DNA from: Pelomyxa schiedti
Lineage: Eukaryota > Protista > Evosea
Reading direction: 5' to 3'
DNA: 39,319 nt
Assembly: GCA_020536535.1 (NCBI GenBank)
Contig: JAHLWZ010000495.1
Location: 1 to 39,319 of the forward strand
Numbering within the stretch: the first letter of the stretch is position 1; every line of letters starts with the position of its first letter. A program made the position numbers and the translations under genes. Below are positions 1,992 through 38,998 of the stretch, one piece after another. The notes under the pieces were generated by a model that saw only the letters and a list, made by a program, of their open reading frames with translations, was not told where the DNA came from and searched no databases.

Positions 1992-3099
1992 AACCGCGGC
2001 AAGATTGCCCAGTGTACGTGGGGGTCATCCAGCATTTTTTCTTTCTGGAAATAAAGGATGGCAGCAGAACAAAAACTCTGTTCAGGCTCCGTAGTATAAC
2101 GGTTAGTATGGGAGATTTTGGCTCTCTTGATCTCAGTTCGATTCTGAGCGGGGCCACTCTTTTTTTTTTCCCCAACGTTCCTTGCCAAACACAACTTGGG
2201 TGGTAACCGTTGCCGATGATGCACACTTTATCCGGATCAACAATTGCTGTCTTTTTGTTAAAACTACTCACGGAACCAGGGAAGCCTGGGGACCGGTGGT
2301 TCCAAAAGTGTCTCCACAACAGCGTCGGACCCACAGCCCTGAGGCTAGGGTAGACCTGACCAATCCATGCCAGAAGGTGTATGTGGGTGAGTAAACTTTC
2401 CCGGAAACATCGAACTGACCTTCTAATGATGAATACTGGCCAACTATTTACCCCTTCATTACCGGATTTATCGATACACCGTCTGCATGGTATCGTCTTC
2501 TGCTTTAGAACGGGTGCATTTGAGGAAGGAGAAAAGTTTGCATTTTCTGTACTGGAAAAACTACTACTGGCTGGCCTGTAGTACAGAAATGGAGATCTCC
2601 CAGACTTTTTCTTTGCCAACACGTGTGTGGATCATGATATCATTAGAAGTGATCTGAAAAAAGCTGATGACGACCCACTGCTGAGAAGTATAATCAAACT
2701 CGCCTGGACTTGTTGCGAAAAATAGCTCCTACCTTGTTGGACCTCCCTGTCACCTTCCAGCAATACACATCTTTCTGCTGTTTTAGTGCTAAAGACTTTC
2801 TATTTCGTAGTGATGAGAATGCAACTGAATTGACCTCTGGTCTGTTCATGAACAGGTTTGTGCACTGGGTTGTCGCTGTACAACAGCGGCGATGCCTACA
2901 GGCACTTAAACGTATTTCCTCTGCCTATCGCTGCTTCGCAATAACTTGCACACTGTACAAGCATGCACTAAAGAACTAATTAGCAGAAAGGCTGAAGAAC
3001 TAGACATTTTACTTCTCACGCAAGAAAGAGTCCCTGAAAGCAGATATTACGAATCGTTTCCAATCCTTCTCGGAACGTCTGACAACCAGGCTGAGGGCA

Positions 3100-3850
3100 G
3101 TGGAGGAAGATTGTCTCTCTCCTGCAACCCACATGAGCACCCCCTTTGAAAATGCTACATTATTGAGATGTCAAGTTGAAGCCGAGGCAGCCATCATCAA
3201 AAATCTTACTCACTGGGTGCAGGAGAATGTCATTCAACCAGTAGTCAAGCATATTGAAGTGAGAGTACAAAACAGTTCCGCAATTTGGAAGACGACATTA
3301 TGAGAGAGACTTCTTCAGGCACAACATAGATTTAGCTTGTCACCTGTGAAAGTTCTGGCCACAGGGGCTAGTACTGCAGCGCAAGGCCCCTGTGCACTGC
3401 TTGCGGTTTTTTTTTGTGGACCTGTATTAGTGGCTGGGGTGCTCACTACATGTATTTCCGGAATTTTACTATTTCAAAGTCCATGATCATTGGGATAAAA
3501 AGAATATTCACAACTGCTCACTCATCCACCACAACATCAAGTTAGAGAATATCCTTGTACGAACAGAAGAGGAGCGAGTGACTGATGTAGTAGTGGCAGA
3601 TTTTGGCTTCAGCGTTGTTGACCCTATATGCTGCCCAGTTTTACCCTAGGCTACTACGCTCCCGAAATAGTTGCCCACAAGCCGTACAGCAATAGTATTG
3701 ACATATTTGCATTTGGAATTATGCTGGCGGAAATGACCCCCAAGCTCGAGTTGATGCGCACCAGAGTAAATGACAAGGGCTGGGAGATACACTCACTAAT
3801 AGCACCCAGCACACCACATTGTGGAATTGATATCTAAGTGCATGGCTATG
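3100..3850 (+). pseudogene. Degenerate protein kinase pseudogene
   Basis: Kinase-like segments: EAAIIKNLTH..NVIQ (alphaC region), IHNCSLIHHNIKLENILV (HRD changed to HHN), VVVADFGFS, then a frameshift to LGYYAPEIV..YSNSIDIFAFGIMLAEM. In-frame stops near 3301 and 3835. Stop-interrupted coding-like sequence extends upstream to about 2200. Confidence 0.8.
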
Positions 3851-5211: not shown

Positions 5212-5304
5212 CGCAACGGTTTGAGCGATACAGTAGATCTGATCAATAATCTGCAAAATAAGACCGAGAACAAACCAAAAAAACGGCGGGCTGGGCATTG
5301 AGAG

Positions 5305-8300
5305 ATGGTGAGGGAAAAAGGCTCTCGACACACAAAGCCTTAACATGGAATAGGGTGCAGGGGACTCCCGTGGGACACAAGATGTAGGGCAGGAAATACC
5401 CCCTCAGTGTCAGGAAGTTAGCCCCGATGCATCCATTAACGTGCAAGACATCTGCGAAGAACTTCGAAGTCCACACTGTGATTACGATGCTCTGCACCTC
5501 TCGTGTATTTTACTTTTCCCCTTGTTCAAACAAGTCCTCACCCTTGTTACAGATTCCAAAATTGATGACGAGGGGGCAATAAAAATCTCACAGGCACTTA
5601 AATCAAACAAATCTTTGGTGGCTCTGCACCTCACTGGTTTTTTTTTCCCAACGTTCATTTGCCCTCACTGATTATGATAATAATGAAAATCCCAGGCAAC
5701 CAAATTGGGGATGGGGGAGCAGCTGGCTTTGGGAGTGCACTTGAAGTAAACAAGTCTTTGGTGAGTCTGCATCTCAGCTGTATGTCCTTGCCATATTCGC
5801 CTATTCATTCGCCTATTCATTCGCCTATTCTCTCAATTGTGGGTGATACTCAAACCAAATCAAATATATAATGACTAGTCAACCAAATTGGGGATGGGGG
5901 TGCTTCAAGTATTGCATGCGCACTGGAGTCAAACAAGTCACTGACGTATCTGGCTCTCAGTGGTGTGTCCCATAATTTGTTGGCTCTCTCTCCCCTTGAT
6001 CTCAACCAAACACATGAATGCCAGGAAACCAGATTGGTTATACGGGAGCTGCAAGGATTGCACGTGCCCTTGAATCAAATCAATCACTGGGTAGTCTGGA
6101 TCTCAGTGGTATGTCCCATAACTCGCTGCTACTTTCATAACCGAAATTCACCACCAGCCAACCAAATTTGTGATGGGGGAGCTGCACATATTGCACGAGC
6201 ACTCGAATCAAATAAGTCACTGGTGAGTCTGCACCTCAGTGGTGTGCTCCGTCATCCTCTTATATCCACCAATTAAAAAATGATCAGACAACCAAATTGG
6301 AGATGGAGGAGCAGCAAGCATTGCATGCGCAATTGAAGTAAGCAAGTCGTTGTTAAGTTTGCATCTCAGCTGTATTTCCCATCATCCTTTTCTCTGGTCA
6401 AGCTGACCCAAGAAAATAAATTCAATGCCTAGGTAACCAAATTGGAGATGAGGGAGCTGCAAGAATTGCGCATGCACTTGAATCAAACAAGTCGCTGGAG
6501 AGTCTTTATCTCGATGGTACAATCAACCATGCATTCACTCAAGCTCAAAATTAAATATCTAGTCAACCAAATTGGGCATGAGGGAGGATCAAAAATTGCA
6601 TGGGGACTTAGCTCAAACAAGTCCCTGGTGAATCTCTCTCTGGACGGTATATGTGTTCACCATCCATTTAATTGCACTTTGCAACTACGCGCGCTTACAC
6701 AGACCAAACAAATTAGACACCCAAATTGGGGAGGATAATGCAGCTACCATTGGACTTCTGATTGAATTAAACAAGCCACTACCAAGTGAAATGGCACCTG
6801 AAAATGGTATAATAGGCAGTACTCGTAATTTTTGAAATCCTTACAGGTCAAGAAGCCGGCAAAAATAATTCCTCACCACTAAGTACTGATGACTCTTCAA
6901 GTTCGTTATCGGCGGGAACTACTTCACTGCCAAATCAAAAACTTCCTCCGCAAGTTTCGTTGCAACAGATAGACAATAAGGTTGTGGCCCCAGGTGCCTC
7001 AGTTTGACTCAAATTCGACAGATAAGCTCCTTGCCATGTGGAACTCCTGTGAGAAATACACCAACGGAGCCAATGAACATCGCAGTTCCATCAGTTGGAA
7101 CACCTTCCCTTTCAGATTCCTCAACGACTTCAAACCCAATGACCCCAGCAGAAATAGTGAGCACTGCAACTCCAACTCCAACTGCAACTCCTACTCCAAC
7201 TGCAACCCCCGCTTTACGTGAGGAAAGGATGAAAACACCACCATTTCAAATACAAACAGCCAATGTTGATCAATTATGTGCCTGGCTTGAATCTATTGGG
7301 TTGGATGACGACTGCCTGAAGATCATCAAAGCAAACAAACTCCGAGGAAGAACACTTGCCAATTACTCCACGCAACAATTATGTATCCTGGGTATTGTTG
7401 TTGGTGATGCAGAATTCATAGTGGAGGAGGTAAAATCACATTTAGCAAGCCATCCAGAGCAATCACTCTGCTTGCAACAAAACATCGTTCCCTGGTTCTT
7501 TCACTCTTTTTTTTCCTAAAGACCTAAACTGATTCTACAGTCAATCTCCTATTATATCCACAGAGTCGCAAGTTGATCTTGTTCCAAAACAATTTGGTAC
7601 CACTTAATGAGGGAGGAGAGAAAAAACTTTAGGCCTTATTATTGTTCTTCCCCAGGGGCAATATCCCTTTCCAGTTCTGCACTGAATTATAAGTGCTTTG
7701 CATTTACTATTGGAAACGAGTCTTATGTGGGGCGATATGCCCTTAAGAACGCTAGAAATGATGCAGAAACTGTTTCCAAGGTTTACCCCTTATTTTTCCG
7801 CTTTTGTTCACAGCCTTGTTTTCCGGAATTGGCTTCTTCAGTTCTTGAAGAACACATGCCATTTTGAAGTTGTCTGCCACACAGACATTCCAAATCGGCA
7901 GGAGTTCATCAGTAACTTGGAGAAGTTCAAAGCAACTTTGAAGGAGCAAAAAAAGGCAAGAAACAAGGTGTGTCTGGAGGACCGTTTTATTTACAAACTC
8001 ACAGCATATACAAGGTCGCAACTATCTTTTATTTTGCCGGACATGGAAGGCAAATGAAAGGGCACAATTTATTGTTAATGACCGCCGACGAAACTGCTTT
8101 TGAAGAGCCCAACTTCGAGTGCCTGAAGAGCAAAGCAGTACTGCTTGGAGATGTTCTTGATGGGATAAAGAAATACTCCGACCTGACAATCGGAATCCTT
8201 GATGCCTGTCGGGAGTCTCCTCTCGCTGATGAGGATGAAAGCAGGGTGTGTCGTTCAGAAATGTCTGCCTGAATAGACTCACTCTTGCACTTTTGCACTT

Positions 8301-8756
8301 CCCTATATCATGAAAAAGTGGAACGCTGACTTGGCGTTCCTCAAATAATGTTTTACTAGACCCGCGGAGGTTCGGAACCTGAATCACACCACAAATTGAC
8401 AAGAGAAAGTTTTCCCACTGGGTGCATTGTCATGTATCCAACAAGCCCTGGTATGTATTTGTTTCTTTGAGAAAATTAAATAACGATATCTCATAGGGAA
8501 GGGCACCTTGGATGCCTGCAAATTGCCCAATCACAAAAACCATGGCTTCTTCACTGGTTGTTTCCTGGAAGGTTTCCCAGTCCATTCCATTCATAACAAA
8601 ATTACTCACCGGCATTTAGTGGTGGAGAAGGCTAGCCCAGGCACACCATGGAGTGACATTGAGGGTGCCATAATCCTGCTAGTGCAGTCCCTATCCAGTG
8701 GCAGGCAAACACCCTGGATTTCAAAGAGTGTTGGGACTCGTTTTGCTCTCTTCTAA
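5305..8756 (+). CDS. LRR (RI/NLRC3-like) - SAM - caspase-like peptidase C14 (p20+p10) fusion protein, predicted N-myristoylated
   Basis: ATG-only exon 1 (5305-5307), then a 46-nt intron, giving MGAGDS. Eight 84-nt LRR exons (NQIGDGGA..IA.ALE.NKSL..L.L). Thr/Pro linker. SAM-like segment VDQLCAWLESIGLDD..IIKANKLRGRTL..LCILGIVVGDAEFI. C14 motifs IGNESY..LKNARNDA, FYFAGHG (His 8042-8044), ILDACR (Cys 8207-8209), TRGG..GCIVMYPTSPG, HGFFTGCFL, GRQTPWISKSV..F. The frame is continuous using canonical GT-AG introns; stop 8754-8756. Confidence 0.9.
5795..5830. repeat. Intronic tandem repeat (ATTCGCCTATTC) x3
   Basis: Three perfect 12-nt copies in the intron between LRR exons 5696-5779 and 5879-5962. 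Confidence 0.9.
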
Positions 8757-11800: not shown

Positions 11801-12142
11801 CAAAAAAAAAAAAAAAAAAAAAAGTTGTGCTGGTTACTGCAGGAACCAAAAACAGGATCATTACGTACTGCCATAGTCGAACCAATTTATGAAGCCGAAG
11901 GTGCTGTTTGGCCACCAGAACGAAGAGTCTGACGAAAACGACGACGAGGACGACGAAGACGACTCAAAGGACGCAGCGGTTCTCCTCGCTATCTCAGCGT
12001 ACGCCAATTTTGTGCGCTCCAGAGGCACCGGGGACCCAGGGGGCCGAATTGTGGGAAGGTCCCATGGCCTCCCCGCACTTTGGCTCGACACAAGAGCCAA
12101 CGACAGCAGCAAGAAGAAAGCTCTGGTGGCAAAACGGCCCAT
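8806..12142 (-). CDS. Receptor-type tyrosine-kinase-like (TKL) protein kinase
   Basis: Signal peptide MGRFATRAFFLLLSLALVSSQS, Cys-rich ectodomain, TM segment GAIIAISVCCGGAVIAVVGLALAV. Spliced kinase motifs: IGRGG|GFGSVFRG, EIAAKR, FLREM..LHHPNIV, IIHRDLK (9724-9738), IADFGL, FGIILWELMTGK, LILRCWAVDPAVRPTF. Thr-rich tail, stop 8806-8808. Some ectodomain splice sites are uncertain. Confidence 0.88.
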
Positions 12143-12369
12143 CTGCTTTTTCTATTGATGGTGGCGGTTGGGTTTTTTTCGAGATCAGAAGAAAAACGGG
12201 CGTTCATGGAAATCTAAGTCCAGGGAACTTCAACCCACTCTGGTTCACTCTCTGATAAGCACGTACCCTCACGAGCAAGTGAGAATGAAGCTGGTGCCAT
12301 ATTCACTTGAGTAACCCCAGGTGGCAGTCTTTTGAGAAACAGGATACCGAGAAAAACGCAGTAACCAAA

Positions 12370-15300
12370 ATGTCAGGAAGCAGCGGTGAGGCACCGCCGC
12401 AGAATTCAGCGACGCCCAGCCGCCACTCGCACCACCACGGCAGCAACCCCAAGCACCCCACATCCGCCGCCACCGGGGGCACCACCCCCATGCCCCGGGA
12501 GGCCCCGCCCACCACCTCGCCCAGGGCCCACCCCCACCACTCCTCCCACCCCTCCCAGATGGCGTCCGCCTCTGTGCCCTCGCCTAAGCCCCCGAAGCAC
12601 TCGTCCGCAGCAACAACAACCACCACCACCACTACCACAACTTCCACGTACGGGGACAACGACCCCGTGGTTTCTAAGCACCGCGGGAGCAGCAAGGATG
12701 ACACGGGGCTAGGAGGCGGCGGTGGTCTCAGCGCCCCAGTGGTCACCAGGCCCCGCTCCAGGTCCTCCTCTTCCATCTCCATAGTGCAGCAGCAGCCGCC
12801 GCAGCAGCAGACCCCCGACGCCGCCGCGGCGGCCACACGCACGAGCCGCTCCAGGAACGACCCCGACGGCGGCGGGAGCGGCAGCGGCAGCGGGCGTGTC
12901 ACCCCCGCCCAAGTCGAGCCCCACTCGCGGCGCGCCTCCTCGTACGTCGGCGCCGCGCAGCCCTACCCCCCGCCGGCCCAGAAGCCCCCGCCGCCGTCCG
13001 GCTCCGGCTCCGGCTCCAGCTCCACGCCGTACCCGGCGCCCCCTTCTGCGCCGGCCACGCAGTCGACTCCCAGTCAGAAGGTGGGGGCGCAGTATCCGCC
13101 TCCGCCGGCGTCGTCGCAGCCTGCCACGGCGTCAAAGGCGGCGTCCGGGGCGTACCCTGCGCCCCCGGAGCCGAAGCCTGGTTCCGCTGCTGCGAATGCG
13201 CCGGGGAGGTCTTCTGCCCAGTACCCGACGCCTCTGGTGGTTGCTGCCCGAGAGCCTGCGCAGAGCACGCCGACGCAGTCGGACCACGCGCTGTCTCGCT
13301 CTGAATCGGATTGCACTATCACTAGCAGGCTATCTATGAGTGTTAGCACCCCGAGCAGTTTGCACGACGGCGGCGGGAGTGCAAGTGATGGGAGAAAGTT
13401 GTTTGGGTCTCCCTTGGACCGAGCTGTGCAACAGTTGGTGCAACCGGGGAATCCTAATCAGTACCCTCCTCCACCACCACAGACTAAATTGCTGCCAGTA
13501 CCTTATATAGTGACTCAGTGTGCAAATTTCCTCACAGCCTGTGGTATGGCTTCCAAATAAATGTTATATCCCCAAAGAGCTTTGGTTAAATATGTGAATA
13601 TATGCATAAAAACAACAACCGTCCACCCAACGTCATTTTCTGCCAGTGTGTCGGTCTCATTGTTGGCTTTTCTAGCAAAAACGGCAGACGGTGTTTTTGT
13701 GCTTGCTGTTAGCAAAGATCGTGTGAAAGAGTTCAGGGAGCTCTTTGAAACAGGTGTGAGCCATTTGTGCTGTCTTGTTTTTTTAATCTCTTATATCCAT
13801 TCTCTGCAGCATTTGTGGAAGGCCGAGATGTCACCTTCCCACCAAACACAGACTACCATGTTGTAGGAGGCCTATTAAAATTGTACCTTTTCACTTTGCC
13901 AGTTCCACTTTTGTCAATGGGACCCGACGGCCTCAACCCCTTTTACAAAGCAGCAGGTTACCCTTTCCCTCTTTGTCACCCATTTGACAAACTAGAATTC
14001 CAGAGTCTGAAGATAATTCCACCTGTCATGTGATGATTATCAAATACCTGGAGACGTTTCCACCTGCAGCCAAAAGTCTTTTACAAGTTATTATTCCACT
14101 GATCCGCACCTTGATAACCAACTGTCCCCAAAACCGTCCAAGGTACATTCCTTACTGAATACAATATTTAACTAGTTATGAGTAAAGGGTGTCACAATTA
14201 ACTCATGTTTTCGCCACTGTGCTGGGCAACCCAAAAACACCTGAAGCAACAACACAAGTAAGAAAAGTTGTTGGAATTCTGTTACGGTTCAAGTTGGAAC
14301 TTCCTTTACATTAGTTTACATTCAAAAGGCATGGACTACATCTTCAAGTGTCACCTGCCGAAGATAAAAAGGACACTAAAGCTGACCCTAAATCAGCTAT
14401 TCCAACCAAACAACCAAGCGATTTATCCAGAGAAGAGCTACTTGAAGTATCCACCAGTTCGTCTTTGTACTTTTTCATAATTATGAAAACAGAGACTCTT
14501 TAAAGCCGAATCTAAAATTCAAGAGTTACAATGCCAGATGAAAGACCTTGAGGTATTAATACTAACTTAAGTTCTCGTATTTCACCAGTTTCAAGTCAGA
14601 AAATACTCGGCTCAAGCAAGATTTGCAAAGCAAGTATGCTCTGATTGTCACTTCGCAAAATGACATGTTTCAGGGAATCTGATGCTCAAGAAATGCTAGG
14701 GTACATTCGAACCCTCCAAAACCAGACTTCCAAAGAAAGCTCAGATGGAACACACTCTACTGCATCGCAACCGGCTGATCTCAGCACACATGCAGCTAGT
14801 AAACCTTCTAAGGAGGAACTACCTCCAAAATCTTCACTGGCACCAGAGAAAGGAGAGTCAGGGCCACGAGTATTCCTTTCCCTTTAAGAGGCACTTCTTA
14901 TTTTGCACAGAAAAGATCTCTGAGCTTTTCAGCCTTACCTCTGAGCAGGACAAAGAGTACATCCTCAATCGACACCCGGAGTGCTTCCTCATCAGTTTCA
15001 ATGCCAACCAGTGAACTGCCTACACTACCCACACTTCATATCAATAGTATGAATCTCTTCCAAACCGCAATGGTGGCAGTAACCTTCTCCTATTTTAGTC
15101 ATAGGGGCACATAACTTACCTGCTGTTGATACGAATGGGTTTTCAGATCCCTATGTTATATTGAAAGTGTCTGACTGGCAGTATAAATCCAAGACCATCA
15201 AAAAGGTCAAACTTTTATTGAGACTTTTCTCCTTACCTAAAATTAGTCACTAAATCCAGTTTGGAATGAAGTTACCTCCCTGTACAATCACTTACACTTC

Positions 15301-26393: not shown

Positions 26394-29374
26394 TCATAGT
26401 ACATCCATCTCGCACCCCAAGGAGGACTCTATGGACCCGTCAGCGTGTTGTGCCATGTGAGTGGGAGGCAGTTGTACTGCGGCATCGAGCGTTGGTGGGA
26501 ACCCACGCATTCTGCCCATGATGAGTGCCAGTGTGACCACAACTTGCGAAAAGCCGCGGAAAGTCTGGGCCAGCCCGCCATTGGCACATACAGTGGTAGT
26601 GGTAGTGAGTGAGGAGGTGGATGACACTGTCTCCACGGTTTTGCAGTAGCCAAGGGAGATTCCCACACCGTCGTAGGCGCTCAGTAATTCGAAGATGACA
26701 CCAAATATGGAGAAGCCAGGGTCGGTACCTTGCCGGTAGAACTCGGCAACCAAGACTAGGAAGACCAGAGAGAATGCCCATAAGACATCACTGCCAACAG
26801 CACTGTGAAGTTGCAGGAGGCCCCCGCTCGTGTCAGGTATGCTTACTGGAAGGGCGTCATCTCCAATTACCTCTGGGGCGGCAGCTGGAGGGGTTGGTGG
26901 TGGAGAACGCTCAGGCGAAGGCGATGGAGAAGGAGTACTTCTTGGACTGGGAAGAGCCGGGGAAGAAGATGGAGACTTGGGATGTGTTGGTGAAGGAGGA
27001 GGTGGAATATTGGTGTCTGCAATAACATGCACAACATCCTCGGCCATGCACTTCAACAGATCCTTTCCCCGATTCCCTGGGCGTGGAGAGCCTTGCGGGC
27101 TTGCAATGGGAGCTGATGTTAACAGTACGGAAGGAGATTGAGAGCGCGGAATAAGTGCAGGCGGTGTGACTGCTCCTGTCGAGTCCCCCAGTTTAGCAGG
27201 CGAATGTGAAGCCTGAACAGCAGCCGCGTTCATCTGTCTTATCAAGGCCAGGTCCAAAGGAAGTGGGGGGGAGTCAAGACTTCGTTTTCCAGTTGGCGTG
27301 CGCTCAACAACCTCCGTGATTACATCTCTTGCAAGAAGATTTGTCCAAAATTTGGATTCGTATCTTACTGAACTCGATTTGAGTGTAACCTACAATAAGT
27401 AAGTTTTTCCTCGTAATTACTGAGTGAAGTTACACACGATAAAAGGATAGGCTGAAGTAGTCATAAAGAAGAGTATGATCTGTGTATTGAATAAGGGGCT
27501 TGGGAAGGATGCGAGGCATTATACAAATTGATAAGCTTGGTGAGTTTGTGATACGTCAACTACAGGAAACCCAGTTGCTCTACTAACGGTTAAGACAAAT
27601 ATTAGGATGGGATTATGTGTTTGCCTTGTATTTATTGCCTCAAGCAATGATATCAAAAATCTACCCCATCCCGTGCAGTTCCCATTGTTGCATTCTACAA
27701 GTAAGGGCATATCGCGGTTGAGTACCCAGAACACGATGATCTGAGCAATGAGTAGTATTGTCCAACTTATGCCAAGCACTCTTGTTATGACTGCGGGAAA
27801 GAGATGTGTGCTACACTCTCGGGGATACACGAGCAGAAATTTAAATGACGGTCGGTGAGTAACTCTCCAAAAAACCCATACAAAGAAACGCAAGTAGATT
27901 GGAAGTGCAGTATTCCCAACAGCCATCAGCACAAACAAGGTCAAAACAATTACAGTGTTGGTGTTATATGGCATAAGTCCATCTGCATCATATTAGATTC
28001 TTTTTGAATACTACACTCTTACCACTGAAAAAAGGGAACCCGGCTTGAAAGAAGGCGCCATTGACGTGAAAGAATGCCCACCAGGTTGGGTTCGTGTTCC
28101 GCGCCAGTAATGAGTCTCGAATCTTGGTGTCGAAGTTGACGTAAAGGCCCAACACCAAGAATCCCAATCCAAGGAAAAACAGTAAAAACAGCACCAAGAT
28201 GGCAGCGAGAAATACAAGTGCTTCGTACTCTGTGAAAAAATTACTGGATAGGTCATCAAAGTGCGGATGGAAACCAACTGCAAGACTGCGAAACAACTTA
28301 GATCCAGCTTTGTGTACATTGTGAGAAAAGTGGTTCCGTAAAAATATTATCTGCATGTGGGAAATGAGCACACAACAATTAGTAGGAACTATTGCAGCAT
28401 ACTTTTAAAATAACAGGAACCAAGACAAGCGTTGGGACGCCTCCTAGCCACATGAATACGATATGCAACCCTTTGCTGGCATTCGAGAGACCTTAATTGT
28501 TGTCCCAGAGTTAGAACTACTTTAGTTACAGTACGATGCAAGAAACCTTGAAAATCGAGAGTACCCATTCCTGTCACTCCAACTGAAGCGCCGATTGACG
28601 CCAATGCTGCTGTATAAGGTATCCCGACAGAAACTGTGTCTGTTCATTGTCAGTGCAATGAAACGCATAGATAAACTCACCAGGAAACTTCCCCTGTACT
28701 ACAGAATCTTTTTCCATGGCCTTTAAGATAGCCCCTCCAATGAGGCACAGGAGTAAGAAATATAACATATGACAATGGGCAAAGGTAGTTTGCTTTTTAG
28801 CGACAACTTTAATTGCTTGCCATAATCGCTTCCCTGTGTTCTTAAGTCCGCCAACGTTCTCTTCGTGTGGATTGGAATCTATTTGAACAGTCTCCGGCTC
28901 TTGTGGGATAGATATTGCAGATATTGTGGGCTCTGGTGACCACTCTTTTGACTTACGCGGGTGGGTGTCATGCTGATGGTGATGCTTGTGATGCTTTCGT
29001 CTGCGTCTGTGGGGTCTCGGAGAATGGGAAACGGATTCTGGGCGTCTAGAACGCGACCAAGAATGCGAACGATCGCGAGAGTGGGAGCGAGAGCGAAGGT
29101 GAGAGTGGCCCTTGTGCGAGCGAGAACTCCGCGAGAGTTCAATGCTGGCGTGTCTACGGCTTCGGGAGCGAGATCTCGTGCGGGTGTCGGAGCACGATCT
29201 GCACCTGGAGTGCCGCCTTTTCAAGCTGCGCGATCGACGTATGCTACGGGACCTGCTTTGGCGTTGATCTGGAGATGTAGATGGAAGTGGAGATGGCGAT
29301 GCAGATCTGACCCTCGGCTCCAAAGTGACGACACAACCCCGGCGCGCAACCGCGTTGCTTTCGTCTTCCGACAT
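26394..29374 (-). CDS. Trk/Ktr/HKT-family (TrkH-type) K+/cation transporter
   Basis: ATG 29374 and an RS/His-rich N-terminus. Four pore-loop motifs: VGVTGMGTLD, AFFQAGF, SRATGFPVVDVS, FELLSAYDGVGISLG. C-terminal GRMRGFPPTLDAAVQLP is typical of eukaryotic Trk. Confidence 0.9.
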
Positions 29375-36296: not shown

Positions 36297-37455
36297 TTTG
36301 AAATCGGGTAATATGAAAACCGCCTGGTTAGATCAAATTTTTTACTTGCACGACTTTTTTCACTTTTTTCAGCAAAAAAAAAAACCAAGGCCAACACATG
36401 GACTAGATTTTAATGCGGCTTAGGACAGACAAAGGAAAAGAAGGCAAACAAGACAAAAAGGAACAAAGAGGAAAGGGAAAAGGCAAGAAATGGTCACAAC
36501 CTGAAGGCTTAGCGAGAGAGAACACACCGAACAACCGATTGTGTGACCGATCGCGCATGTGGGAGCAGCCCCAAAAATGGTTGCAAAACGCCCACCTCAC
36601 CCCCGGTATGCACCACGCGTCACCGCTACGAGACGTGCGGAATGTGTCTCGCTCCTGTGAATTGTTGGCTCGAACAACGCTGAGGTGTTTGTGCCCTTTT
36701 CTTGGGAACTGTATAATTGTTGTGGATGCACGAAATAATGCAGGGTTTTCAGCAATTGGCACAACATAACCTGAGAAAGTGGAGCAAAGCCACACGTATT
36801 CTCCTGGACCTGCCTGTCAGTCTGGGTTACCTATTATGTTTGAGTGGGGTGATGATGAATATGGAGAGGGGGATTTACCTTGGTGATGTTACCCTGTAAG
36901 TGGAAAATCCACCACCTATCCTCAGGTGAAACGAGAAAAAGAAGAAAGAAGCCACACACTGGTGGCCAAACTGCTGGAGATCAGAAGGCCGGCGATGCTC
37001 CATGATAGCCACAACACCTCCTGGTTTTTGGGGTGAGAAATCGAAAAATAAAAACAGAGAAGACAAAACATACCACTGTCCATCATTGCATTGTATAACA
37101 ATATACTGTTGGCAGAAGCCACACTGCACCCTGCACCCTCTGCAACATGTTTCCTTTCCGAGGTTTTGAGGGCAAACGACTCTACATTAGACAAAACTCA
37201 ATCGATCAGGAGTTTGTGCACTAAAAATAGTTTTATTTTGACAAGCCACACCCACACTCACAGGCTCCGAATTAATATCTAGTGTCGAGAACCACTTGAA
37301 TTAAACCTGAGAGGATAGTCGACATCATAACTGGATCATTGAGCGGAGAGTTGGGGTGGAGGTTTACATACCAAAACACTATGTTCCACCCTTTTTTCTC
37401 AGCCCCCACCTTTTGGTGTAGGGGCTACCTATGGGTTTATTTTTGATTTATTTTT

Positions 37456-38998
37456 TTATGGTTGAGAGGGGTGGTGGGCAGCTGTTGCGGCTTGTTGTTG
37501 CTTTGCTTCTGCATCTCCTTTATTGTAGTTGAATATGGACAGCCCAACAAGCACAACACCGCAAAGGAATTGCATGTTTACATTTGTGCCAAGGAGCCAC
37601 CAGCTCATAACCGCTGTGATAAGCACACTGACAGCAACAGCAAAACCCTAAACAATGGGGGATTAATTGCCGGAGGAACAGAAAGTGTTAGAATACCTTG
37701 ATAATATTATCCGCATATTTCATCACCATGGCCACTAGAAGACCCCCAACAGCACTTGACAGCACAATCAAAGCAGTGAGGTAAGAGTGCCCCGAGAATA
37801 CTGCCAAGCCTTTTCCACTCCAAATGGCATCAAACAGCACACTTACAGAGCACAAGGCGATACTATACATGCCTGAGTGTGATTAGTCATAGGTAGTGCT
37901 TGATGTTGAACTAAACTGAGTTGTAAGTTCCTCTCCCAAATGGTTGCAGTGCCGGACTTAAGAACCTTCTCAAAGTATACTGAAGCCATGCCAGATAGAA
38001 CAGTTACAAGTAGAGAGCAAATGATCTACAGAGAATAAATTGAAAATCTTGTTTATTAATAAATGTTAGCAGTACCCAAATTAATATCAATTAATAAATT
38101 GATCTCTAAATTACCCCAATGATGTAAGCTGTTGTTACGCCAGTTCTACCAAGAGTCGAGGTTTCAGATATGTCACTCAGAGGCGGAACGTCACACATAA
38201 CACCAATGGATGCTTGTTGGACTAAAATCGCGGCAATGATAAGTTCAACTAAAGCACGCCACATAGCTGTATTCACGAGTTTTTCTTTAACAAGTTAGTG
38301 GAAGAGTGCTGGGGGTGGATACGTACTCAAAATTATTACAGAGAGAACTGCTGTCGTCAAGATTTTGAGCTGATTGAGAACTCCAAACACAGCACCGTCC
38401 ACAGTGCTGAGACCCGCAAAGGCAAGGATATTTTGAATAAAGTACAGAAAAGCTGGTACACTGGTAGCTGCCGATTTGGCAATTGTGTCCTGCGCATCTG
38501 TTAGAGAGACGGACCATCCAGACAGTATCACATACATACATAAAAATACTGCGGGATAGGAACTGAGGGTGACCTCGTTGCTAACATCAGCAGTGCTGAC
38601 ATTACTAGGGCATTCAAAGCGGGGGAAAAAAAATTAAGACCCAGTAACTTGGCGAGAAGAGAAAAAAAAAACAACAACCCACAGAAATTGCACTCACAAA
38701 CAAACAAACTATGGTGTAATTAATTACCGAATTTAGTTATCTCAATAAAGAGTACAGCCACGATCTTGCTGTAGTGCTCATGCTGTACTCCCCGAGAGTA
38801 GCTCACCAACATCCAATACGCGACGCACTGCACGGTGAGGCCCACGAGCGCGAACGCCTTCATCGAGCACCACCCCCGGACGCACGGCCCTACACTCCAG
38901 ACCACAGATCCAACGCCCTCCGTTTGTTTTGGCAACACGGACAACCCACCCGGTGTCGCATCTCCGGTACCCTCTCGGTTACTCAAACGCTGTTGCAT
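37456..38998 (-). CDS. SLC35A-type nucleotide-sugar transporter (UDP-Gal/UDP-GlcNAc/CMP-Sia family)
   Basis: Motifs LTVQ..LVSYSR..YS..AVLFIEITK, VPAFLYFIQN, VLNQLKILTTAVLSV, SGMASVYFEKVLK..IWERNLQLS, GGLLVAMVMKYADNIIK|GFA. Stop 37456-37458. The true start may be the downstream MKAF ATG. Confidence 0.92.

Follow-up and report, generated by a model that had tools for sequence, protein, structure and literature searches.

Activation of caspase-family proteases by assembly is achieved in animals through death-fold adaptors and nucleoside triphosphatase (NTPase) platforms, while MALT1 uses CARD/BCL10 filaments and becomes active by dimerisation on an oligomeric scaffold. Here, we analysed a gene located at 5305-8756 on the forward (+) strand of a 39,319-nt stretch of DNA (hereafter the window), which is the entire scaffold JAHLWZ010000495.1 of assembly GCA_020536535.1 from Pelomyxa schiedti (Archamoebae). 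Its predicted product carries leucine-rich repeats (LRRs) of the ribonuclease inhibitor (RI) type, a SAM domain, and a caspase-family protease domain (Peptidase_C14, hereafter C14) in one chain. We read it as a multidomain paracaspase-like protease, which would be membrane-tethered, restrained by its LRRs, and activated through SAM-driven proximity, and we give this reading a probability of roughly 0.55. A protease, a SAM domain, and a repeat 'sensor' in one chain that lacks both NTPase and death fold would be a different and simpler solution to the activation of such enzymes.

Among the solved structures, MALT1 (PDB 3v4o, 3uo8, and 4i1p) is the best match to the protease by both profile and fold, with the GHG and D-x-C-R motifs aligned, at an identity of just 18-20%. 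In contrast to the window protein, MALT1 contains Ig domains as well as a death domain, depends on CARD/BCL10 filaments, and lacks LRR, SAM, and a myristoylation motif. The inflammasomes of NOD-like receptors (NLRs), such as NLRC4 or NLRP proteins with caspase-1, likewise bring together RI-type LRRs, a caspase-family output, and induced proximity. However, they use a NACHT/NB-ARC NTPase and a CARD/PYD/death fold, none of which was found in the window protein or its paralogs, and it is the window gene, unlike these inflammasomes, that holds protease and LRRs in the same chain. All 787 residues are covered by LRR, low-complexity linker, SAM, and C14, with no NTPase family among them. A first-pass annotation of the window had already proposed that both NTPase and death-fold scaffold are missing, and Pfam scans of the window exons and the LRR paralogs returned neither; no death-fold or Ig family, as found on either side of the protease in type 1 and type 2 animal paracaspases, was detected in the window exons or in the paralogs. 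Because there is no NTPase, the window protein is not an NLR, and the names NLRC3 and NOD3 given to its paralogs mislead.

SARM1 is an ARM-inhibited octamer ringed by SAM, in which the enzyme needs proximity (PMC7688312). The order of its domains (ARM-SAM-SAM-TIR) is likewise repeat domain, then SAM, then enzyme, and the window gene has a protease instead of the TIR NADase. Nevertheless, SARM1 has two SAM domains in a closed octamer and ARM rather than LRR, and with no homology outside SAM the likeness is an analogy only. Bacterial caspase-like proteins, among them 'caspase family protein' entries of the orthocaspase or bacterial paracaspase type, likewise pair the protease with repeats (TPR, Sel1, Ank), but they have no introns, and their partner domains are often of cell-envelope types (PG_binding, PEGA, FGE-sulfatase).

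No long unspliced open reading frame (ORF) lies within 5305-8756 (+), and a single frame appears after short GT-AG introns are removed. Reading combined with scripted splicing led to a single predicted coding sequence of 2364 nt (787 aa, TAA stop at 8754-8756), which comprises 20 exons and 19 introns, every intron being GT-AG with a size of 40-114 nt. The predicted domain order is the MGAGDS start, eight RI-type LRRs, a degenerate ninth repeat, a linker rich in Ser, Thr, and Pro (S/T/P-rich), SAM, and C14, and the features are placed as follows:

5305-5307 (+): exon 1, the ATG alone; an in-frame TGA lies at 5299-5301, two codons upstream
5308-5353 (+): intron 1, 46 nt, GT-AG
5354-5504 (+): exon 2, residues 2-52 (GAGDS, a unique segment, and an N-terminal partial/cap LRR)
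5553-5636, 5696-5779, 5879-5962, and 6025-6108 (+): LRR 1-4, 84-nt exons
6158-6241, 6288-6371, 6433-6516, and 6563-6646 (+): LRR 5-8, 84-nt exons
6717-6806 (+): degenerate ninth LRR or C-terminal cap, a 90-nt exon
6847-7234 (+): S/T/P-rich linker of low complexity, comprising exon 12 plus the beginning of exon 13 (residues ~300-420)
7235-7494 (+): SAM domain, residues ~422-508, with five core helices at about nt 7265-7450
7541-7596 (+): 56-nt micro-exon between SAM and protease (model B), flanked by introns 7495-7540 and 7597-7655
7656-7780, 7842-7967, and 8015-8245 (+): Peptidase_C14, exons 1-3 of six
8042-8044 (+): catalytic His620, within FYFAGHGRQ
8201-8209 (+): Asp673-Ala-Cys675, within ILDACRES (catalytic Cys675 at 8207-8209)
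8360-8450, 8497-8571, and 8620-8756 (+): Peptidase_C14, exons 4-6 of six, stop at 8754-8756

The junction between SAM and protease allows two models. In model A, a single 138-nt intron (7495-7632) skips the micro-exon and keeps the frame, giving 777 aa; in model B, the micro-exon is included, which restores Q..A..L...LNYKC, a motif that precedes the protease throughout the family. Model B is preferred, as it better matches the paralog alignment, its introns are of typical size, and the motif is regained; the domain content is identical under both. A single intron at 7495-7655 was rejected, being out of frame and running into a stop. The first-pass annotation had placed an intron at about 7496-7540; in model B this intron is 7495-7540, and the micro-exon at 7541-7596 and a further intron at 7597-7655 come after it. 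The other intron it had named, 6981-7021 (41 nt), stands, since frame 0 of the linker meets a stop unless it is removed.

The spliced protein (aa 21-787) aligns end to end with paralog P0011 (KAH3758966.1, 'Protein NLRC3', 857 aa) at 46% identity (BLASTP E = 0), and it also aligns end to end with paralog P0010 (KAH3759925.1, 'NOD3 protein'). Exon 2, which opens with GGT GCA GGG GAC TCC and thereby yields the protein start MGAGDS, encodes a product that aligns with the N-termini of both. The P0011 gene, on scaffold JAHLWZ010000721.1 (L001), shows the same ATG, 46-nt intron, and GG... start (6001-6050) and is also built from 84-nt LRR exons. Its protease exons measure 126, 126, 225, 90, and 75 nt, compared with 125, 126, 231, 91, and 75 nt in the window gene; these P0011 sizes come from 8-mer mapping, which is clean only outside repeats. 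Of all the evidence at hand, this shared exon plan speaks most strongly for the predicted model, the 3-nt first exon included. The single spliced frame had been claimed in the first-pass annotation, and it is borne out by this colinearity with annotated paralogs and by paralog P0154, whose product spans the LRRs through SAM into the protease.

The P. schiedti genome paper (PMC8887013) describes an anaerobic archamoeba bearing endosymbionts, with 7.4 introns per gene and 98.4% GT-AG introns. The intron structure of the window gene fits this genome-wide pattern, and its 19 spliceosomal introns indicate a genuine eukaryotic gene and not contamination. Judged from its sequence, the locus is an intact nuclear gene of P. 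schiedti.

The protease domain was recognised by Pfam on exon 8015-8245 alone (77 residues), where Peptidase_C14 (PF00656) scored 21.7 bits against a cut-off of 21.4, and paralogs that are 59-66% identical to the window module scored 71-85 bits over the full profile. His620 is invariant in the family alignment (A3), and the His/Cys dyad is retained in nearly all paralogs. In the alignment of hidden Markov models, GHG falls opposite YYAGHG of MALT1, and ILDACR falls opposite LLDMCRK. The complete C14 domain with its dyad, as first proposed, is thus present with both His620 and Cys675 aligned to MALT1. A profile of the Pelomyxa family plus bacterial relatives was compared with solved structures, with E-values of 3.7e-28 for MALT1 (~230 residues) and 6.8e-10 for caspase-1; metacaspase-1 reached 2.8e-7 in an alignment confined to the N-terminal half of the domain. 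The metacaspase-type active-site motif D-S-C-H-S-G is not present in the window protein, where the motif reads ILDACRES. An AlphaFold2 (AF2) model was made of residues 436-804 of paralog P0153, which are 66% identical to the window module; it reached a predicted local distance difference test score (pLDDT) of 88.8, and a caspase fold can be recognised in it together with a SAM bundle and a linker helix. Foldseek placed MALT1 first for this module (E 1e-14, template modelling (TM) score 0.77 on the target), followed by caspases. A single-sequence phmmer search of the P0153 protease against PDB gave no match, and a profile was required. Judged by profile, fold, and nearest sequences outside Pelomyxa, the protease is nearer to paracaspases and bacterial caspase-like proteins than to metacaspases, which agrees with the affinity suggested in the first reading.

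An Asp two residues before the catalytic Cys is part of the S1 pocket for basic residues in MALT1 and metacaspases. Since Asp673, two residues ahead of Cys675, aligns with the S1-pocket Asp in LLDMCRK of MALT1, a specificity for Arg or Lys at P1, and not for Asp, is expected. A conserved R-T-R-G was found at residues 687-690, in a low-confidence loop after the catalytic Cys, and we infer that it may be a candidate self-cleavage site.

For the SAM domain, Pfam SAM_2 scored 22.4 bits against a cut-off of 20.5 on the single exon 7022-7492, and SAM_1 was detected in paralog P0004 at 1.1e-14. The family profile of the SAM region matched SAM domains exclusively in PDB (best 6e-8), with SARM1 among the matches. 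The AF2 model of the window SAM exon (pLDDT 84.5) consists of five core helices followed by a short sixth, and the top 50 Foldseek matches of this model in PDB were all SAM domains or SAM-containing chains. The isolated SAM-domain entries matched with TM scores of 0.7-0.84 and a root-mean-square deviation of 1.4-2 Å on most, and the matches include Shank2/3, Scm, Ph/PHC3, DGK-delta, CNK2, and SAMHD1. Many of the best fold matches are polymer-forming SAM domains (Shank, Ph/PHC3, Scm, DGK-delta). What had been noted as a SAM-like domain is accordingly found by Pfam above cut-off, by the PDB profile, and by AF2 with Foldseek, and the window gene is predicted by profile and model alike to encode a real SAM domain. 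SAM is also the best-conserved segment among the paralogs, with a mean column identity of 52% and an identity to the window gene of 49-72% in all paralogs except P0004.

Each 84-nt phase-1 exon of the LRR region encodes one 28-residue repeat of the form NQIGDxGAxxIAxALExNKSLxSLxLS, and the pairwise nucleotide identity among the eight exons is 58-81%. The tandem 28-residue repeats with the pattern LxxLxLxxNxIGDxGA place them in the RI-type class. The exon of the ninth LRR shares 45-55% nucleotide identity with the other repeat exons and retains the TQIGEDNAATIG... pattern in its first half. LRR_6 of Pfam gave partial matches on single window exons, because every exon cuts the Pfam repeat in two; it gave 118-162 bits in the colinear paralogs, and a local LRR profile counted 8 repeats in the window protein. 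The eight RI-type repeats and the degenerate one were thus recovered as first described. Across 5553-6646, the residue whose codon is split by each LRR exon junction (Y, G, F, G, A, D, C, V, D) varies more than any other in the repeat. All LRR exons are symmetric (phase 1-1), so repeats could be gained or lost through exon duplication.

The linker, regarded as disordered, is composed of 16% Ser, 15% Pro, and 15% Thr, and no Pfam domain was detected in it by the exon-wise scan. In P0011 (residues ~303-345) and the same columns of P0010, LRRs and linker are separated by a conserved hydrophobic segment, LFWFTWVIHPTLGASL..., which the window gene lacks. This segment could be an intron retained in the annotation or a real insert.

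An MG start with Ser or Thr at position 6 is the N-myristoylation consensus. MGAGDS fits a myristoylation-type pattern, with Met-Gly, a small residue at position 3, and Ser at 6. This start had been picked out from the window alone, and MG is in fact common to all four full-length LRR paralogs, with MGAETS, MGGQTS, and MGAEQS as further starts. Eight members begin with MG (the window gene, P0011, P0010, P0152, P0001, P0002, P0003, and P0012), and their position 6 is mostly Ser or Thr.

The P. schiedti genome contains 18 SAM-C14 loci and about 20 protease loci. Pfam, together with local profiles of SAM and LRR, shows that the SAM-C14 module at the C-terminus is constant while the N-termini in front of it vary:

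RI-type LRR N-terminus: window gene, P0011, P0010, P0152, P0151 (fragment), and P0154+P0006
MORN N-terminus: P0005 and P0008
Sel1 N-terminus: P0003
Ank + PARP_reg N-terminus: P0001
Ras/Roc N-terminus: P0002
Second C14 at the N-terminus: P0004
SAM-C14 without an assigned N-terminal module: P0153, P0007, P0012, P0009, and P0174
SAM and protease fold region kept, Cys motif reading LLDSFF: P0173 ('hypothetical protein Pelo_1249', 684 aa)
Protease present, SAM not detected: P0013 and P0023 (dynamin + kinase)

Having lost the catalytic Cys, P0173 looks like a pseudo-protease, perhaps with a role as regulator or decoy. The window gene is not a singular fusion: it is one of six LRR-SAM-C14 paralogs among about 20 family members, several of which are annotated though mis-named. 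In the annotation, 'NLRC3' and 'NOD3' are among the names given to five LRR-SAM-C14 paralogs, three of which are entered as a single gene from LRR to C14. The names found in the database (NLRC3, NOD3, 'protein kinase', 'caspase 8') include NLRC3 and NOD3, which derive from LRR similarity only.

The LRR paralogs share 46-47% identity with the window gene overall and 59-61% in the SAM-C14 module, and they agree with it in the order of parts, from MG start to C14, and in exon plan. In a maximum-likelihood tree of this module, which included 17 non-Pelomyxa sequences (mostly presumed bacterial, without reference paracaspases or metacaspases), the Pelomyxa family was monophyletic with a support of 99/98. 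The LRR-bearing genes formed one subclade (96/94), in which the window gene branches earliest and is the most divergent, and the two MORN genes paired at 100/100. N-termini were thus exchanged only rarely and copied thereafter. Because one genome holds the same SAM-protease module behind many N-termini, with no close relative among 1.8 billion representative proteins, the family offers a compact natural experiment on sensor-effector assembly via exon and domain shuffling.

Directly upstream of P0011, positions 1464-5898 of L001 hold another LRR-SAM-C14 gene in a tandem arrangement. The annotation divides this gene into P0154 (554 aa), whose product covers the LRRs, SAM, and the start of the protease, and P0006 (219 aa). 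The former stops at about model residue 548 and the latter begins at about 568; the break falls inside the protease domain and is therefore taken as an annotation error rather than as evidence of two genes.

Outside Pelomyxa, the 77-residue catalytic exon was searched with full HMMER against 1.84 billion representative proteins. This gave 236 matches at E ≤ 1e-3, and all 13 below 1e-10 (13/13) were from P. schiedti. Matches past the top 13 were 30-50% identical, and those that could be identified were bacterial or metagenomic 'caspase-like' proteins, plus P0023 of P. schiedti. The nearest relatives elsewhere are bacterial caspase-like proteins with 28-34% identity across the protease domain (e.g. 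Microcystis aeruginosa WP_261779248.1), and metagenome-assembled genomes of proteobacteria, acidobacteria, and Desulfobacterota also hold caspase-like relatives. A scan of bacterial genomes returned hundreds of protease-only relatives (28-34% identity), none reaching into SAM, and a scan of JGI metagenomes returned distant protease-only matches (22-37% identity) and no close family relatives. Partner domains in the 97 nearest outside proteins were PG_binding, PEGA, TPR, Sel1, Ank, FGE-sulfatase, and C-type lectin, and the family SAM and LRR profiles had 0 matches among ~135 fetched outside proteins. As far as present data go, the SAM-C14 family appears to be restricted to Pelomyxa. Paracaspases, according to a previous study, entered animals and dictyostelids from bacteria (PMC3417536). 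The Pelomyxa protease may derive either from an amoebozoan paracaspase or from a separate bacterial transfer.

In the literature, no paper was found on SAM-caspase fusions or Archamoebae caspases, and nothing on this architecture appeared under SAM with caspase or paracaspase, orthocaspase with LRR, or paracaspase with Amoebozoa. A search for Archamoebae plus caspase gave a single, unrelated paper, and the word 'caspase' is absent from the P. schiedti genome paper (PMC8887013). The LRR-SAM-C14 architecture is new, being undescribed in the searched literature.

These results can be arranged into a proposed mechanism. N-myristoylation would tether the protein to a membrane, where the LRR domain would bind a ligand or partner and keep the protein inactive. 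Engagement would then permit SAM-SAM self-association, which may also join paralogs, because SAM is so conserved. Under the resulting crowding, the protease would dimerise and become active, in the way that oligomer scaffolds switch on MALT1 and initiator caspases, and the active enzyme would cleave after Arg or Lys rather than Asp, given the shared Asp-x-Cys motif. The proposed activation is plausible and resembles that of SARM1. As for a role in immunity, symbiont control, or death, the pattern of expansion and swapping is the sole hint, and such a role is a guess.

Several points weigh against this mechanism. Many SAM domains are not polymer-forming, and there are some that bind RNA or heterotypic partners. 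Protists have RI-type LRRs in abundance, mostly without a known immune role, and the neighbourhood of the window gene gives no pointer to function. The transcript, the protein, and its activity are predictions from genomic sequence; the MG start hinges on an initial coding exon of 3 nt, the model of the protease fold is that of paralog P0153, used as a proxy for the window protein, and the P1 preference depends on a single aligned Asp. In addition, no annotated product with SAM or protease (203-1500 aa) from scaffold JAHLWZ010000495.1 was found by searches with the P0011 module (471-1500 aa) and the family profile (nominal 203-646 aa, matches to 684 aa). Neighbouring genes of this scaffold do appear in the database, and the window gene seems to be unannotated, or annotated solely as a fragment outside the searched lengths, e.g. 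LRR-only. In practical terms, public annotation apparently lacks this locus and gives its paralogs wrong names.

A plain role in signalling competes seriously with this reading. The protein could be an ordinary regulatory or signalling protease that makes limited substrate cuts at membranes or the cytoskeleton, not an immune or death switch, with N-terminal modules that serve localisation or partner binding and are not sensors of non-self; we regard this as possible. The paralog modules (MORN, Sel1, Ank, Ras, dynamin + kinase) are typical of membrane, cytoskeleton, or signalling, MALT1 as the closest solved relative is mainly a signalling protease, and no conflict-type gene neighbourhood was seen in the window. 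However, a lineage expansion of ~20 genes with tandem copies and swapped N-termini is the usual pattern of conflict systems, a circumstantial argument against a purely regulatory role.

The membrane-tethered, SAM-activated protease could also be part of something larger, a lineage surveillance system in which ~20 sensors (LRR, MORN, Sel1, Ank-PARP_reg, Ras) would co-assemble via the shared SAM into mixed membrane-bound polymers and thereby activate their proteases, which we consider doubtful. If true, this would be a third independent proximity route for caspase-type proteases, after death-fold filaments and STAND NTPase wheels, and it might serve in surveillance of bacterial or archaeal endosymbionts, prey, or viruses. 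The host P. schiedti lives with permanent prokaryotic endosymbionts.

Another explanation keeps the protease and assigns SAM a different task, either as a heterotypic adaptor to another SAM protein or paralog or as an RNA binder, with activation via a separate scaffold. SAM is nearly the same behind unrelated N-termini, which fits a common partner, and the best SAM profile matches include heterotypic domains (CNK2/HYP, liprin) beside polymeric ones. On the other hand, many homopolymeric SAM domains were among the fold matches, and no separate SAM-only partner turned up, although no search was aimed at one; this explanation is unlikely. Finally, that the single frame is an artefact, behind which stand either two genes (one for the LRRs, the other for SAM-C14) or an unexpressed paralog in decay, is very improbable. 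In favour of this, the locus has no annotated product and is known from its genomic sequence, Met419 sits just ahead of SAM, and the L001 paralog is annotated as two genes. Against it, that L001 split lies inside the protease and marks an annotation error, the annotation of three paralogs runs from LRR to C14 as one gene, and the window gene itself has 19 canonical introns, 787 open codons, intact catalytic residues, and a linker that needs its 41-nt intron.

Other features were noted on the scaffold. A TrkH-type cation transporter gene (26394-29374, - strand), a gene for a PqiA-like membrane protein (P0172; 29689-33115, + strand), and a nucleotide-sugar transporter gene (~36600-38800, - strand) have no evident tie to the protease gene; the product of the ORF at 29689-31833 matches 'Paraquat-inducible protein A [Pelomyxa schiedti]' at 97% identity. 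A multi-exon receptor-like kinase gene (8806-~11200, - strand) is convergent with the protease gene, its 3' end lying ~50 nt from the stop of the latter, and encodes a transmembrane stretch followed by motifs of the tyrosine kinase-like (TKL) type (HRDLK, DFG, and a C-terminal CW..DP..RP). On the other side, a divergent gene extends from ~5211 downwards (- strand), ~93 nt from the protease ATG, and its start, MGATES, is of myristoylation type. Kinase-like exons (GYYAPE...) at 3500-3840 (+) share 42-44% identity with the kinase part of P0023. The scaffold has a gap of 100 N at 989-1088, and a GC-rich stretch at 12001-13600 (65% vs ~44% elsewhere). Within this stretch, at 12307-13560 (+), lies a 417-aa ORF in which Pro, Ser, and Ala abound and for which Pfam gave no match. 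A tRNA-Gln gene with anticodon TTG was identified at 2085-2157 (+), with an Rfam tRNA score of 59 bits and agreement from ARAGORN.

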